DNA of 64,000 bases. Source: Takakia lepidozioides (lineage: Eukaryota; Plantae; Bryophyta). Position 1 is the stretch's first letter. Each line of letters starts with the position of its first letter. The DNA lies in NCBI GenBank assembly GCA_030704615.1, contig CM060732.1, forward strand, positions 51,274,001 through 51,338,000, written 5' to 3'. Shown piece after piece: positions 37,100 to 45,335 of the stretch. The notes under the pieces are model-generated. The model was given only the letters and a program-made list of their open reading frames with translations, had not been told where the DNA came from and searched no databases. The translations under genes were made by a program, and so were the position numbers.

Positions 37100-37760
37100 G
37101 CTCCAGGTTTCATGTTCTTCCAATGGATGGAAGCCACTGTCTGCTCCTGAACTACGCGCATGGGTTGGTATGATCTATATATTCATAGGTATCAAGAAGC
37201 TCCCAAATAGCAGGTACTACTGGGTGACTTCCAAGGTTTTTCTTACATGCCCTGTCATACGGAAGGTAATGACGAGAGATCATTTTGAGTCTATTCTACG
37301 TTGTCTCTATCTTATGGACTTTACTTTGGTTGCCGATCAAACAAGCCCTCAATTTGACTGGTGCTGTGATGAAATGGTGTCTAGGTTCAATCCCTGTGGA
37401 ACTTGAACCAAATTGTGGCTGTTGATGAAGTCATGATTCGCTACAAAAGAAAGTGCTGTGCAATTCGGCAGTATGTGCCCAAAAAGCCTATTAAATAAGT
37501 CATTAAAGTGTGGGCTTTGGCTGATTCTGTGATTACATTGGTGTAATATGATTTTGATGTTTACTACGAGAAAGGATGGGGCCCTGGTGACATGAAGGAG
37601 AAGAGTGGGAAGAGAGAGGGGTATGATGTAGTAAATGGGTTTGTCTTTGAATTGCATGGACACGGCCATGTCATTGTCACTGATATTTTTTCTCTTTTCC
37701 TCAATTGCTTTATGACATCGTCTTGCTTGACATTGGGTTACTGACATTGTGAGGCTAAAC
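37100..37760 (+). pseudogene. Degenerate piggyBac transposase fragment
   Basis: WKPLSAPELRAWVG...GIKKLP...VMTRDHFESILRCL, VAVDEVMIRYKRK...QYVPKKPIK*VIKVWALADS and GHGHVIVTD all align with the intact ORF at 41444-43555. Confidence 0.85.
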
Positions 37761-40700
37761 AAAAATGGTTTGTCTGCTTCTTTGCTTTGAAGACTGATGT
37801 ACATGGACAATCTTGGTTCAAGATGCATACATTCTAGCAGCTTACAGCCCTTTGGTGGTGGGACAAGAAGGGGGTGTTTCAAATCTCTTCTGCAGCTCGG
37901 CCAACTAGGAGAATGCAGGAATGACTGGACCAAAATGGAGTTGGCGGCACAGTTTTAAATCAATTGATGGTGTCATCAATTTTTTTTGAATTAACTCATT
38001 CTATATATATATATATATATATATCTATCTATCATTGGATTCCTAGCTTCAATACGCACCGATAGCAACTCTCCGATCATGAATCCGATAAGAAATGACA
38101 AAGGTATGGACTTTTGAAGACCATACAATGGACTTGTTTTCGCAGTGAATGGAATTACAATGGACTCAAGAAGTCCTATATGCCATTGGTCAATTCCATT
38201 GAAATTTGGACATAAGGTGGTCATTTTATGGATTTGAAGTGGCAAAATCCCTCTCCATTTGGTTCTTATGGACTAATATATGTCCCAAAAAGGTGGTTTA
38301 TTTTGCCAAGTCCATGGTGTACTTTGATTTTAAGGTGTCATATTTTACTACAAAGGATACAAAAATATAATCTACAACGGCTTGGTTGTATATAGACAAA
38401 TTGATGTAAATTCTAATTTTTGATATATCAAATTTTATTCAAATTAAAGACTAAAATTTATAGTAAAAATTATTTTTGATATTTGGGATAAGACCATTTA
38501 CTAAAAATGTTGAATATACCATCGTCTATCATCATTTGAATTATTTGGGGAAATATCGTCAACTTTAAATTTGGTCATGGACTTCCATGGAATGCAACAT
38601 CTGCCGTTTTTGGTCTAGTTATTCTTGCATTCACCCAGCTACTGGCCCAACCTCTGCTGTCAGTGTCTGCCAATTTGTGGGACATTCGAGGGTTGAAGTG
38701 CCAAGCGTACCCATGCATATGCAATATCAAATGTCATATATTATGTATGGTATTGACGTGCATGACTGACGACCTCTCCCGCGCGCAAACATGGAAGAGA
38801 GAGAGAGAGCGACGTCAAAGGGGCATGAAGTCTGACGACGAGGTGGCCGGTTAGGCTCAAGAACCGACCACCCGTAAAGAAATCACTAACTTGACGAGGG
38901 ATCAGCGGCCGATGGAAGATTTCCTTCCATTAACTAACTACCGGTAAGCGTAGGGTCCAACTCATACACTTATGGGGCAAAACATTTGTTCTAAATCTAG
39001 TTCTAGCTAATTTTGCCAACTCGGAAGTAGGCGCTCCAAATGGAGGGGATTTTCCGAGAAAGCTTAGGTACAGATTGCTTCACATTCACTCTCATGAGAC
39101 TTCATATGTGTGCCAGGGACATCATCTTTTCCACTATCCCGAGGGGAGAGAAAACCTATCCTAGCAAAAAAAAGACTCATACCAATAGTATCTTATTTTT
39201 TCACCTATTTTCTAAGTCATTTTATCCATTAGAACTAGATTTCTAAAAACAAAATAGAAAAAACACTATTTATGTAGGTTTTGTAATAAAAAATTAAAAT
39301 ATAAACTACATATTATCATAGTACTATTTCTATTTTCTTAGTTCTAGCGAATTTCTAATGAAAAATCCCATTTAAACTATTTAGTAATGCAGAAATATAA
39401 CTAATTCTAGAAAACAAAATAAAATTTAATGAATGAGAATGTTTAAAAACTCTCATTCTAGCTTCTTTATCATAAGAGCAATAGAGGATTGCAGTACTAA
39501 TAGTTTTGGGTGGATTAACGGTATTGATATTCATTTTATTTTCAATATGAATCTGTTAAATGTTTGATTTTATTGATGGATAATTATAATATATTAATAG
39601 ATCTATATTTTTATTATCCAAAATATAGACTAAAGACAAAATACAATATTAAGAGTTTTGATATTTCATTAACTATTATCATTGTCATATCTGATCTACA
39701 TGTAATCGTGAAATATCAGTAAATTGAAACGTGTTTATCATTAAATCAAAGTAATATTTGGGAGTGCTATAACATTTATATTGAATGTATGAAGAAACGA
39801 AAGAAAGAAAGAACGAACAAAGAAAATGCTAGAGCAGAATTGACAAAGATGAATTTCATAACTCATATTATTATTATTATCATTTCGGGGCAACCCGGGC
39901 AACTTCAAGAATGCTGTCCCTGGACAACCGTTTAGGCATTTTTGTGCCTAATAATAAATTCAATCAATTAGCAAATTAGGCACGTTTTGAAAACCATTTC
40001 TCACATTAGGCATCTTCATGCTATAATTTTTTAGAATTAGGCAAATGAGAAGAGAAACATTTATTTTCTTAAGAATCAAAATACAAAATAGATTCAACCC
40101 AATGCCCATAAGCCATTCCAAACTCCAGATACCCTTCATTTCCTTTGAAACCCTAAAAATGCCCCTTGTTGTTGTACGCGGTGCTCCAAGGCGGAAGCGG
40201 TGCTCCGATGCTCAAGCTCGTCCAGTGCTCACCAAGTCACTAGTGGTAAGCAAGCATCTTTACTTGATTTCAATGATGGGATGTGCTGGTACCGTGCATC
40301 ACGTATCGCTTCAGTGGACTCAGTAAGTAGACTTGGTCTAACCAGATATTTGAGCATGAGTGATAGCCCAAGGATGTACCGGTAGTACAACAACAAACTA
40401 GGCTTAATCTTCAATATTGGGAATCTTCTCAAATATATTATTCAAGGCCACAATTGTTCAAACGTCCAGTTTTTCAAAGGTGCAGTTTAACCCTTAAGCG
40501 CCCAGTGCCCAATGTTGACTTTTTGAAAAAAGTGGACCCCAGCTCAGAAAAATGAGAATATCTCAGCGAAAAAAAAGTTTTTGGGAAAATTGACCGGACA
40601 TTATGCTCATACCTACCCCTTCCAGACACCGGTAAATTTGCAGGCCAATCAGGCGAAAATCCGAGAAACGCCACCGTTGAGTGTGGGGCCCATTTTTTGG

Positions 40701-40885
40701 GCCCCTCCCAAAACAATAAGGGAAATTGGAGGAATTTGCAATTTTCACTGACGGGATGAAATCTGCAGGATCTCATCCTGCTTACAGGTGTTGTCCAGCA
40801 CATTGGCATTCTGATGAGCCATAGAATGCAAAAAATGGATTCATATTTTATGATTTACACCTGGTCAAAGTAAGGGGGGTCAAAA

Positions 40886-40937
40886 TGTGTGAGTGGGAAT
40901 TGAACCCAGTGGCCTGCCCCAACTGGCAGCTCACACA
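40886..40937 (-). ncRNA. Candidate anticodon-less tRNA-like structure, copy 1
   Basis: Minus strand TGTGTGA-G-CTGCC AGTTGG GGCAG-GCCA-CTGGG TTCAATT CCCAC-TCACACA, followed directly by TTTT. Expression is unproven. Confidence 0.5.
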
Positions 40938-41019
40938 AAGAAAGACCGACATGTGGCCAACACTAGCATCAAATCAGACTCAGAAAAACTAGAGATGAAC
41001 CCACATTTACACGCCGAAT

Positions 41020-41071
41020 TGTGTGAGTGGGAGTTGAACCCACTAACTTGCCCCAATTGGCAACTCACACA
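41020..41071 (-). ncRNA. Candidate anticodon-less tRNA-like structure, copy 2
   Basis: Minus strand TGTGTGA-G-TTGCC AATTGG GGCAA-GTTA-GTGGG TTCAACT CCCAC-TCACACA: 7-bp acceptor stem, 5-bp T stem, 7-nt TTCRANY loop. Expression is unproven. Confidence 0.5.
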
Positions 41072-41443
41072 TGAACACAAGGGGGGAGACTCCTCCCCAG
41101 GGAGGGAAGGAGTCTCCACCCTTGTGCGCACCCCCGCTTGACTAGGGGACTACCACGTAATTATACTAGACACAAAGAAAATGGACTCAGTCCTAATTGA
41201 CACACAAAATTGTTGCAGCAAAGACCTCGGAGCTACATGAACACTAAGGCAAAAAGCTGGAGTAGCAAACAAATCATTCAGATCAGGACTCAGTGAACCC
41301 CAATACTGCACAACCACAGAATTATACCTCTCCTTGGACTGTCAAGCGACTCTCTATGGCTGGATCCTCAGTACAAATGTTTCATGGCTACCAACAACAA
41401 ACCAACCCCCAAACACACCACTGCTTAGAAAAAGACAGAACAA

Positions 41444-43555
41444 TCAGAGAAGGCTATGGCTCTTGACAAAGCATCCTCCAAGGCACATATACACGTCTCC
41501 ACACGCGTGACAAAAATACCTTTGACGCATACCGCACTGAACACACTTCCTCCTCCTACTAGTCTTGAGGGAGAAATGCACAGACCCCGGGTTGGGCACA
41601 TCTGCCCCTGGCATTACTGTTCTCCTGGGAGGAACCCACCCCACAATTAGTCCCTTTGCAACCTCCAAATTGAAAAGCATGTGGCTAAGAGGAATGTGGC
41701 CCTTTCCCCTCATAAAACCCAGGTACAATATGTAAGCATTCACCAAAGAAGTGTCAACTCCATGAAAGTACAAGCGGTGCCACCATTTATGGTCCCTGGT
41801 CTGAACAGAGTAGTAACCCCGTAGCTGATCCTGAACATCCACTCCCCGCATATGCTGCTGGTAATGAACCACAATAGGGGAGGTAGGCACATCACGTCTT
41901 GCCCCTTTGTGCCATCTTTGTATGAAGCAATCAGGACCGACAGGGGAAATGGCAGTGGAAATCATGGTCACCAACTTGGCATCCATCCAGGCAATAGCGG
42001 CTACTTTGCCACTTATGTGAACACGATATTCCAGCCTACCTCTCTCACCCTTCTTCCCCAAATCAAGGCACGTAGGAAAACCCACTCGGGAGGTTTTTAC
42101 CGTGCCAGTAGCATAGATCTGTTTTGCTGCCAAATCATAGAACAGGATGGGGCTACTGAAAATTTTTTCCATCGTTACAATATGGCCCTTACCCTCAAAT
42201 CCTTCTAGTAACCTTGTCACCACGCCATATCCACTGCCATGGGTCATATCATTCCCATCATCCTTCCCAAGGTAAACCTCTAACTTCTGAACATATTTGG
42301 AACATGCACCACACAAACACCACACCTTCAGACCCCACTGCACAGGCTTCTTGCTCAGATATTGCTGGATTCGGGCATATTTGCCCTTGTACTTCACCAT
42401 TTGCTCATCCATAGTCAAATTCTGCTCGGGGCTCATGTAGGTGGCATACAAACCATTTAGTGCATGTAGCAACCACCTGGTTTTAGCTAAATTATCAAAA
42501 GCAGGGTCAGTGTCAATAGTGCATACATCCTTGTTGTCAACAAGGTGGAGGCACCTCAGAATTGCCTCCCATCGGTTGCGGGACATAATGCGCATGATGG
42601 AAGGGCAATTGAAGAAGGCATTGTTGGCTTTCCAATACAATCTAGTACTAGGCAATTTTTTGATTCCCATGAGCATGTGAACAGCAAGCCAAGCCTTCAA
42701 TTCACGGATGGTGATAGGGTACCACCATCTACCTCCTTTCAGGTTTCCATTCTGGTTTTCTGTCCGGGCATACAAGTTGGTCATGCTGCAAATTCGGCGC
42801 ATGACCGATAGTGGCCAAAACAAATTGAAAAAATCAACTGGATTTGCTGAATCTCCAAAAGGCAAACGAGGACCCGAATCCCCACCTAACCATGTAATGT
42901 CTGGCAATTCAGTAGCAGAGGAGTTCCACATGTCATCACCAAACAACTCAGCAGGACCCCACTGCTCCCAATTGGGCGGCAAATCATATAATCCCACCTC
43001 ACGCGTTGGATTCCCCGTGTCAACACAGTAGTCCATCAAGTCAGGATTGTCGATGTCAACAAGGTCATCATCTTCTGGATTATAGTCACAATCAGAATCT
43101 GATTCACTATCATCTACTTCCCCCTCAGGCAATTCAACTTCAGAATCCAACCCCAAGAGCTCAGGGATAGTGCACAACATTGAATCATCAAGATTACACA
43201 CAACACAGGACTGTGACGATACCACATGAACACCAAGGACACCAAAAAAAGAGACAGTATAATTTTTTGTACCATTCAGGATGTCCCATGTCTTGTCTAC
43301 CACAGTGCCATATCCAAATTCGTGGGCATTGCTAGACGATGCCACATCCTGAAGGTGCAGCTCAGCCACTGCCACCTTCACTGTGGATCCCAAAATCCCT
43401 ATGTCCTCTATAGTTTGGGAGTGACCAGCAGGATCACATAGTGGATTTTGAGAGTTGCGCAAGGAGTAGGTCGAATTGCCCATCTCATCACTCATGAAAT
43501 CAAAAGAGGGTTCAATACGATTACCTCTCTCCCTGGCTAGTTGTTTGAGCCTCAT
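41444..43555 (-). CDS. piggyBac transposase (DDE_Tnp_1_7-type, C-terminal Cys-rich domain), 703 aa
   Basis: PVDFFNLFW...TNLYA, MSRNRWEAI, LTMDEQMVKYKG, KPVQWGLKVW, YATGTV, WMDAKLV, MRGVDVQDQ, KWWHRL, C-terminal CVQC...CHAC...CLGGCF..H. Confidence 0.92.
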   Translation of the reverse strand: MRLKQLARERGNRIEPSFDFMSDEMGNSTYSLRNSQNPLCDPAGHSQTIEDIGILGSTVKVAVAELHLQDVASSSNAHEFGYGTVVDKTWDILNGTKNYTVSFFGVLGVHVVSSQSCVVCNLDDSMLCTIPELLGLDSEVELPEGEVDDSESDSDCDYNPEDDDLVDIDNPDLMDYCVDTGNPTREVGLYDLPPNWEQWGPAELFGDDMWNSSATELPDITWLGGDSGPRLPFGDSANPVDFFNLFWPLSVMRRICSMTNLYARTENQNGNLKGGRWWYPITIRELKAWLAVHMLMGIKKLPSTRLYWKANNAFFNCPSIMRIMSRNRWEAILRCLHLVDNKDVCTIDTDPAFDNLAKTRWLLHALNGLYATYMSPEQNLTMDEQMVKYKGKYARIQQYLSKKPVQWGLKVWCLCGACSKYVQKLEVYLGKDDGNDMTHGSGYGVVTRLLEGFEGKGHIVTMEKIFSSPILFYDLAAKQIYATGTVKTSRVGFPTCLDLGKKGERGRLEYRVHISGKVAAIAWMDAKLVTMISTAISPVGPDCFIQRWHKGARRDVPTSPIVVHYQQHMRGVDVQDQLRGYYSVQTRDHKWWHRLYFHGVDTSLVNAYILYLGFMRGKGHIPLSHMLFNLEVAKGLIVGWVPPRRTVMPGADVPNPGSVHFSLKTSRRRKCVQCGMRQRYFCHACGDVYMCLGGCFVKSHSLL

Positions 43556-43904
43556 CGTGGCTGGCAGAAGACGTCTGGAAGTCAGGCCAAACCTCGAGCC
43601 TCAAAATGTCGTTGACCTCTGCGGTGAACCCAAGGGGGTCTCCTTCCTCCTTGCGATCTACCCAACCCAAAATCTCTGCACAATGGCGCCTAAACAAGTA
43701 ACGAAAGTTGGAGGGCTGTGGAAATCCAGGCCAACGCACACGAGCAGGTCTCTTCAAACACAAGAGGTAGTCCTCATTCAGGCACCCGACAATCCGCTCG
43801 ACTTGCTCGGTTGATGCGCCCAGTGAGCGTGCCCACTTGGCAATCGATGCAGCTTGAGTCTCCAAATGCGCAGGTGCAGGGGGAGGCAACACACCCGAAC
43901 CCAT
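43521..43904 (-). CDS. Hypothetical 127-aa ORF upstream of and overlapping the piggyBac transposase start
   Basis: Open ATG-initiated frame inside the element on the same strand, with protein-like composition. Function unknown. Confidence 0.35.
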   Translation of the reverse strand: MGSGVLPPPAPAHLETQAASIAKWARSLGASTEQVERIVGCLNEDYLLCLKRPARVRWPGFPQPSNFRYLFRRHCAEILGWVDRKEEGDPLGFTAEVNDILRLEVWPDFQTSSASHDEAQTTSQGER

Positions 43905-45335
43905 CTTATACTATGTAGCTTCAACCTTCATCCACCAATTTGCATATGCACACAAGGATAAACACAAAGATGAGCTACACGATGCCCTAACTGCGCATAG
44001 TCTAGCTCAGGTATCAAACAATGAACATTGCCTTGAATGCGCACCCTGAGTATCAATGCAAAGCCGGCCCATCCTCTCTCACAGCTATGGCTCAGTCTCT
44101 GTAGCGGTGCCACAATTTCCAAGTTTCCTCAACTGAAAGAGAAAGAGATAATGGAAGATGCAATCGGAGCAGACCACCAACGACAACCTGTCAAGGCATC
44201 TGCAACGGCAACCTGCAACAAAGTATGGAACACGCGCGAACGCCACAACAGACGAGATCACAACACAAGGCAAAGCGCGGGAAGGAGAGAGACGACGCTG
44301 AAAACGCGGGAGCAAGCCAAAATCGCTGCAGAAGCAGACCCCACCTCCTGCGCAGCCAAAAATTGCAACCCTAACCAAAAAAAAAAACCTAATCGCGCGT
44401 TGGAATCCTGACTGCCATGTGGCTGGCATCCTACCCTCCAAAAATCAGGTTAATCGGTTCAAATCCGAGAAAAACAGAGGGGAAAAACCAAAACCAACGG
44501 CCGAAAACGGGTCGAATGGGTGCTTAAGGGTTAAGGAGGATAGCAGGAGGTGGGTAGATAAGGTGCAAAGAGGTTGGATAATAATTTGCAAACTCCTCAA
44601 TTTACTGAAGGGTGTTTTTGACACGGGGGTAATAAGTACCCTCCAAGAGCTTGTGATTTTGGTGCCAGTACAATACGAAGGGAATAGTGTATGTACCGGT
44701 AGTACAACCTATCACTTACTTATAGACTCTTATACACTCTATAATTTTATATGTGGGTCGATTGGTGCTGGCTATTAGGGGGACGGTAATATGAAGCAAT
44801 CAATGCTAGTGTCAAAGTTTACAAAAATTAGCAAGGAAGAGCATTTTGAGGCTATGAAAAGACAAAGAGAGCAAATTGAAGCTGAAGTGCGTCCACCCGA
44901 GACAATTCTGCCTGATCCATCATGACGGAGGAGGGTGGGACGTTCTCGTGAATGTGAAAACCATGTGACTCTTTTTTTGTCTTCAGTACTTGCTCAAGTT
45001 CCACCTGAAGCTACAATTCAGCCTAGTCGCGACATTCATTTAATGCAGGTTGCAAATGCCAACGAAAACATCGTGATGACTAGACCATTTGGTTCAGTGC
45101 ACAATTGTGGCCTCCTATTGAAGCTGCTATGAAGCGGCTTAAGAACCCCAAAACCCCAGGGAGGTAATAGACTACCTCTAACGTGCGTATAGGTTCTCGG
45201 GCCAATTTGTAAGTCCCTATGACGAGTTGGCTAGGTCATCATTGAGGAATTGGTTTGACACTGAAGGCGTCATGAAGAGTCATGTTCCTACCATGATCAA
45301 GAGAGGGGGAAGTTGGTTTCGCGGTTGGTGAGTCA

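Follow-up and report, generated by a model that had tools for sequence, protein, structure and literature searches.

A candidate tRNA-like RNA module downstream of the transposase gene in an apparently intact piggyBac element of Takakia lepidozioides

Introduction

What are two short, tRNA-shaped repeats doing behind the stop codon of a transposase gene, and would they serve the transposon as RNA, as DNA, or not at all? The question is raised by a locus within a 64,000-nucleotide stretch of T. lepidozioides contig CM060732.1 (the whole stretch is referred to below as the window), where a preliminary description made from the letters alone had placed a cassette of two anticodon-less tRNA-like units and a hairpin inside a piggyBac element, and had read it as a transposon-encoded module for RNA processing. 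tRNA mimicry is already known as an RNA-processing signal in a few lncRNAs, organellar mRNAs and viruses; a DNA transposon would be a new carrier. The statement that no such module had been described for piggyBac agrees with our full-text literature searches, which turned up no account of a tRNA-like element in a DNA transposon, piggyBac included. Since piggyBac is in wide use for gene transfer, an unrecognised accessory module in an apparently intact copy matters.

Results

The element that carries the cassette

TTAA and inverted ends bound a 4,040-bp piggyBac element, and the cassette lies between its TIRs on the transposase sense strand, in agreement with the assignment of piggyBac as the carrier (Table 1). 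The end sequence TTAACCCTTAAGCGCCCA is found at 40487-40504 and its inverse, with one mismatch, at 44517-44534 (inverted repeat I6: 18 nt, 94% complementary); the repeat and pattern search of the window returned this end pattern at these two sites only. Both hallmarks of piggyBac were seen, i.e., a TTAA duplication with short TIRs that begin CCC and end GGG, and a Cys-rich C-terminal transposase tail that aligns with relatives. The PF13843 domain (DDE_Tnp_1_7) matched transposase residues 238-608 with E 1e-75. The element is apparently a complete, intact copy of plant-type piggyBac. A second, divergent piggyBac transposase fragment (37128-37903, plus strand; 30-44% identity to the intact one) lies about 2.6 kb from the intact element, and no unit was found behind it.

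Table 1. Features of the piggyBac element and its cassette, in window coordinates.
Feature	Coordinates	Strand	Basis
TTAA target-site duplication (40487-40490) and TIR; element 3' end (relative to transposase)	40487..40504	.	
TTTT directly after unit 1; Pol III stop or simple 3' trailer	40882..40885	-	sequence
tRNA-like unit 1, 52 nt; C-C mismatch at outer T-stem pair	40886..40937	-	fold -22.0 kcal/mol, pair table
Spacer between units, 82 nt	40938..41019	-	
tRNA-like unit 2, 52 nt; 17/17 pairs standard	41020..41071	-	fold, descriptor, pair table
GC-rich strong hairpin, 4 nt upstream of unit 2	41076..41126	-	folding
TATAAT (41165-41160) and A-box-like 11-mer TAGTCAAGCGG (41144-41134)	41134..41165	-	sequence
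piggyBac transposase ORF, 703 aa, unbroken	41444..43555	-	ORF list and PF13843
TIR and TTAA (44531-44534); element 5' end	44517..44534	.	

The two units and the hairpin

Each motif of the preliminary description was recovered on the minus strand at the position given in Table 1. Measured from the stop codon, the units lie 373-558 nt downstream, and 395-580 nt separate them from the element's 3' end; on position alone they are candidates for a place in the 3' UTR. As a direct repeat they share 85% identity over 55 nt at a distance of 134 nt, and the repeat is itself beyond chance: none of 100 window shuffles gave a single match to the shared 22-mer. The fold that had been claimed for them was confirmed: a 7-bp closing stem, a 5-bp arm with an ARTTGG loop, a 4-nt linker, and a 5-bp arm with a TTCAAYT loop. 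A script count of the differences between the units also matched the earlier account, giving seven, which comprise one compensatory pair (T-A versus C-G), an R/R change in the D-like loop, a Y/Y change in the T loop, two changes in the 4-nt linker and the one C-C mismatch in unit 1. Six of the seven fit the fold; when six transitions and one transversion were placed at random, one broken pair or fewer was obtained with P = 0.23, which is not significant. Taken singly, the units fold with unremarkable energy (z -1.7 and -2.3), their opposite strands are about as stable, and a bare 17-pair descriptor (allowing at most one mismatch) also returned 0-2 matches per shuffled set (about 200 kb, both strands). 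The window units on their own prove little.

The folding check bore out the strength of the hairpin, and did not extend to the single units, whose stability is unexceptional. The 51-nt hairpin (41126-41076) has an MFE of -43.5 kcal/mol (z -6.9; none of 200 shuffles folded as well), with arms of 23 nt that are 91% complementary (inverted repeat I1). The fold of the spacer (40938-41019) is not significant, with z -1.2. The whole cassette (40860-41180, minus strand) gave one large multi-branch MFE structure of -132 kcal/mol (z -5.4), in which the 5' strand of unit 2 is paired with the 3' strand of unit 1 because the acceptor strands of both units are identical; the local unit folds therefore have a competitor.

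ARAGORN reported 0 tRNA genes in the window, and Rfam gave nothing near threshold and no tRNA match even at E up to 10. A canonical cloverleaf tRNA was rejected on these blank searches and on the 4-nt linker that replaces the anticodon arm. No further unit was found in the other 60 kb of the window. A hairpin resembling a T arm or B box (TCGG-TTCAAAT-CCGA) occurs at 44418-44476 on the plus strand, antisense to the transposase and 55-113 nt inside the element's other end, and scored 18.6 bits with the covariance model of the units. It was rejected as a further unit: it has no acceptor pairing and partly coincides with a subterminal inverted repeat, part of it being the inverted counterpart of 40656-40668.

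Other copies of the element

The preliminary description had allowed for the outcome that the cassette would be absent from other copies of this piggyBac. The cassette was found to recur in them, with unit number and hairpin variable. Contigs from four runs were aligned to 40491-41700 at an 80% likeness threshold; the DNA runs among them were X1, with the same organism label, and X5, a plant metagenome sequenced in a different study. The contigs break off or branch precisely at 40886, 40937, 41017/41020 and 41085, with other sequence past these points, and X5 includes a 52-nt contig that equals unit 1 and branches at either end. In one copy 40937 is joined to 41128, so that the hairpin, unit 2 and spacer are missing; in another 41079 is joined to 41128, and the hairpin is missing; several copies keep the base and carry a shorter hairpin (loose ends at 41085). 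The hairpin is thus variable across copies. At a likeness of at least 80%, the TIR-proximal part, the end of the ORF and the block 41017-41085 aligned in other copies, and no such alignment was obtained for the spacer and the rest of the UTR. The block, which extends unit 2 by 14 nt on its 5' side and by 3 nt on its 3' side, is about 90% kept. From the recurrence, the variable joints and the alignment of this block, the units are read as a family feature of variable number that is better kept than its surroundings. Each run gave 8-25 contigs on the whole stretch 40491-41700, which does not suggest an abundant SINE.

Two of the runs, with the same species label, were guessed to be RNA, as their size and longest contigs (6.7-9.7 kb) fit transcriptomes. 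Their contigs with unit-like stretches (about 90%) are 400-1,100 nt long and come from diverged copies only. One contig extends through a TIR into the neighbouring DNA, and so these runs may be DNA or represent read-through. These contigs hint that related copies may be transcribed, and have no bearing on cleavage; the present copy was absent from every run recorded as RNA.

A relative with the same fold

With the whole transposase as query, two distant homologues only were retrieved (27-33% identity), and their contigs (L001, L002) hold no unit. The C-terminal 300 aa of the transposase retrieved 28 proteins with 35-50% identity. DNA was sought for 12 proteins (one was without DNA), 19 loci came from an alignment-based metagenome scan, and the locus set totalled 47 loci, or about 149 kb. 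A unit was present at exactly 1 of the 47, at 2133-2182 of L024, the contig of P0004, which is the fetched relative of highest identity (50-51% in the C-terminal part of the transposase). The L024 unit is 50 nt long, lies 82 nt after the transposase stop codon on the sense strand, and reads TCCAATT / CCAC-ATTATGG-GTGG / CTCC / TCAGG-TTCAATT-CCTGG / GATTGGA.

This unit has the same T loop with GG/CC closing pairs as unit 2, the same 4-nt linker and the same 7-bp and 5-bp stems; its D-like stem has 4 bp and a loop ending in GG. Twelve of the 16 comparable pairs are changed on both sides relative to unit 2, and all 16 still pair (pairs were counted by script; MAFFT misaligns the 50-nt L024 unit). 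Two G-U pairs of L024 become A-C mismatches on the other strand, and the tRNA-type loop letters are found on the sense strand only. When the complete locus set was shuffled 300 times, the exact T loop together with 5/5 and 7/7 pairs arose twice (about 0.007 per set), an estimate that precedes any demand on D arm, strand or position. Because the unit was found by its fit to the structure, its weight lies in this shuffle estimate and is not a covariation statistic; its stability is ordinary (z -0.6). We take the L024 unit, judged from its sequence, as a real homologue of the window module. The possibility raised beforehand that the stems would not be conserved among homologues was not what was seen, for the fold is kept in L024 with different stem letters. 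A covariance model fared poorly: built from the two window units, it was too sequence-specific, and L024 scored 10.5 bits with E 0.85.

Taken together, the three units agree in those parts of a tRNA that its end-processing enzymes read. The 12-bp stack of a 7-bp acceptor and a 5-bp T stem is formed by 7/7 and 5/5 pairs in unit 2, by 7/7 and 4/5 in unit 1, and by 7/7 and 5/5 in L024. All three have the T54 T55 C56 R57 A58 T loop with G53-C61 closure, as GG-TTCAAYT-CC. The D-like loops (ARTTGG in the window, ATTATGG in L024) both end in GG, which may dock on the T loop as in the elbow of a tRNA. The module is probably a real, element-bound RNA signal whose structure is conserved.

L024 carries an in-frame TAG at 1921-1923, before the Cys-rich tail, and is therefore considered a decayed copy. 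A 16-nt tandem repeat (2240-2325) begins further on and runs to the contig end, 143 nt past the unit, so that the 3' TIR and any further units are not visible in this contig.

Distribution among relatives

In a tree of the C-terminal parts the window transposase groups with nine proteins (support 100/99), and within this 10-member clade a unit is present in the window and in P0004. No unit was found at P0015 (L046) or P0013 (L047), whose 3' ends are complete to the TIR over about 610 nt and about 1,220 nt, nor in the 314 nt and 732 nt available for P0003 (L026) and P0011 (L025), respectively. The sister clade had no unit at any sampled locus. As four sampled related lineages are without the module, it is a lineage-restricted accessory and not a general piggyBac feature; its absence from lineages of the same clade makes it dispensable for piggyBac as such. 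Its history would be either one of repeated loss or one of movement between elements.

Among the 19 loci from the alignment-based metagenome scan, 0 had a unit; the single-protein scan of metagenome contigs returned nothing, and the same was true of the viral and prokaryote-genome scans. Purely structural descriptors were not used as evidence because shuffles give similar counts. Two candidates, L028 4982-5036 and L013 5894-5845, were rejected as AT-rich or antisense chance matches, and no significant fold was found in the regions behind the L025, L026 and L028 transposases.

Discussion

Proposed processing of the transposase transcript

Our preferred reading is that the units are tRNA mimics lacking an anticodon arm that lie in the 3' UTR and are cut by host RNase P and tRNase Z; judging from the sequence evidence we would put its probability at about 0.45. 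What is observed is the sequence of the units, where they lie within the element, their presence in further copies, and a single distant relative in which the fold is preserved. The further steps are inferred: the strand would be transcribed, its RNA would fold, the enzymes would cut it, and the cut would serve a use. The 7-bp acceptor stem would stack on the 5-bp T stem with its TTCAAYT loop, and the GG of the D-like arm would complete an elbow. Nuclear RNase P, which in land plants is the protein-only PRORP type, would cut at the 5' edge of each unit, and tRNase Z after the base following each unit's 3' edge. The transposase mRNA would thereby acquire a 3' end independently of poly(A), with the strong hairpin 4 nt upstream as a possible shield for it; small tRNA-like RNAs would be freed by the cuts, and transcription would stop within the element regardless of the sequence around the insertion site. 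Should the cuts occur, a cut-and-paste transposon would have a new means of setting the 3' end and dosage of its own mRNA wherever it lands, and the units would be natural, compact (50-52 nt) plant RNase P/Z substrates for multiplexed expression of guide RNAs or small RNAs.

The claim that RNase P can dispense with the anticodon agrees with substrate data for Arabidopsis nuclear PRORP3 (PMC4797305). Deletion of the anticodon domain was without substantial effect on cleavage, whereas deletion of the D domain harmed both binding and cleavage, and the cleavage site was set by the acceptor and T domain. The shape of the units is that of an anticodon-deleted pre-tRNA, and the tRNA parts that matter to PRORP3 are exactly those that the units keep. 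The PRORP3 substrate likewise retains the acceptor, D and T parts with the anticodon arm removed (PMC4797305); it was engineered from a bacterial tRNA-Gly and cleaved like wild type, whereas the units belong to a natural element and have a reduced D arm (5-bp stem, 6-nt loop, no U8 or A21).

An extension of the preferred reading would make the whole cassette a punctuation array, yielding a hairpin-capped, poly(A)-independent mRNA together with freed mimics and variable spacers as autonomous small RNAs, which would act, e.g., against host silencing or as a mobile signal between cells. It would be a DNA-transposon version of MALAT1, of the gammaherpesvirus tRNA-miRNA genes, and of engineered tRNA-gRNA arrays. 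We hold this extension to be very unlikely. The earlier suggestion that the hairpin or spacer is released as a functional small RNA is doubtful, some copies being without the hairpin and the spacers being unconserved.

Other readings of the units

The same structural evidence fits units that act as RNA without being cut, by attracting tRNA-binding factors, and it does not distinguish cleavage from binding. Such uncut mimics could make the mRNA more stable or aid its export, could keep RNA-dependent RNA polymerase and silencing away from its 3' end, or could move it from cell to cell; tRNA-related sequences reportedly trigger systemic mRNA transport in plants. A tRNA that keeps the elbow and lacks the anticodon arm is a full-efficiency RNase P substrate in vitro, so the escape of an uncut mimic in the nucleus would need an explanation, and we consider binding without cutting unlikely.

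The units could instead work at the level of DNA, as a tiny Pol III gene or a TFIIIC-binding B-box site, which would make small RNAs of its own or set a chromatin boundary against silencing of the transposase gene. The 11-nt GGTTCAAYTCC, a B-box match, is the sole stretch identical in all three units, half an A-box (ARTTGG) lies within the unit, TTTT follows directly after unit 1, and the further B-box-like hairpin at 44418-44476 lies near the element's other end. The first half of the A-box is, however, unmatched, and within a unit the boxes are about 12 nt apart, whereas those of tRNA genes are spaced far wider. No T run follows unit 2 or the L024 unit, and where plant tRNA genes have a TATA-like and CAA context upstream, the units have a GC-rich hairpin and a T-rich tract. 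Nor would a boundary or binding site explain why the acceptor and D-like stems of L024 pair with wholly different letters. The Pol III signals that had been pointed out upstream lose their force on inspection: TAGTCAAGCGG, taken as an A-box, mismatches 2 of 9 specified consensus positions, and TATAAT is weak as part of a promoter at 94 nt upstream of unit 2. Both the TATAAT and the A-box-like 11-mer were judged to be chance matches. A DNA-level or Pol III role is in our judgement quite improbable.

To a similar degree we doubt that the units are passengers of no use to the transposon. On that view, part of a tRNA-derived SINE or MITE, or else a palindromic repeat that duplicates internally, would have inserted into the 3' region of a single piggyBac lineage and been replicated with it. 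The patchy distribution among related lineages, the difference in unit number between copies, the 8-nt inverted ends on the units, the exact unit 1 contig with different flanks on both sides in X5, and the non-significant comparison of units 1 and 2 are all in keeping with such a history. Likeness of sequence would then be expected; L024 shares loops and geometry and almost no stem letters, and the two lineages agree in how the units are oriented and placed relative to the transposase. Neither a target-site duplication around the units nor a SINE body or tail was found, the rest of the window (60 kb) is without a unit, and the whole-genome runs gave a few dozen matching contigs where hundreds or more would be expected of a SINE. 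A tRNA-derived SINE was rejected on these grounds, as the units have a B box and half an A box only. The idea that the units are subterminal transposase-binding repeats was dismissed because they lie 395-580 nt from one end only and their stems covary in L024.

Comparison with known systems

Returning to the preferred reading of units cut by host enzymes, a close likeness is to mascRNA of MALAT1 and its MEN-beta counterpart in vertebrates, where a tRNA-like fold lies downstream in a Pol II transcript. In the MALAT1 type the RNase P cut makes the 3' end of the upstream RNA, a nearby structure protects that end, and RNase Z frees a small RNA; the order of a protective structure followed by a tRNA-like unit is common to that type and to our proposal. 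mascRNA keeps a small anticodon-like stem and the window units have none; the protecting element of MALAT1 is a triple helix and here would be a hairpin; and mascRNA comes from an animal lncRNA with proven processing, whereas here the processing of a plant transposon mRNA is proposed from sequence.

The t-elements at the ends of plant mitochondrial mRNAs are partial tRNA mimics (acceptor and T arm) that serve as processing signals for RNase P and RNase Z; unlike the window units they are organellar and single, and are not known from any mobile element. In MHV68 tRNA-miRNA genes and in engineered tRNA-gRNA arrays, tRNA-like punctuation lets host tRNA enzymes free the adjoining RNAs. The former are driven by Pol III and the latter are artificial; both use complete cloverleaves, unlike the window units, and in contrast to these cargo arrays the spacers between window units are unconserved between copies. 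The HDV-like ribozymes of R2 and L1Tc and the hammerheads of Penelope-like elements and retrozymes are cases in which a mobile element carries a structured RNA signal that sets its transcript ends. These ribozymes belong to retroelements and cleave themselves, whereas here a DNA transposon would borrow host enzymes by mimicry. With tRNA-derived SINEs the window units have in common a B-box and tRNA-related letters, and they differ in being without body, tail, target-site duplication and anticodon arm, in their low copy number, and in their fixed position and orientation inside a DNA transposon.

Additional observations

A 127-aa ORF (43521-43904, minus strand) overlaps the start of the transposase ORF in the window; it had no Pfam match and did not resemble the ORF of equal length that precedes the L017 transposase. 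Of the 128-aa ORFs, the one behind the L003 transposase is unrelated to the one behind that of L047. In the sister clade (L003-L011 and L017-L022, JGI metagenome contigs) the transposase was called as 2-3 adjacent ORFs, suggesting that it contains an intron or a frameshift. These sister-clade proteins recur in many samples of one sample series, and one host organism is probably common to all of those samples.
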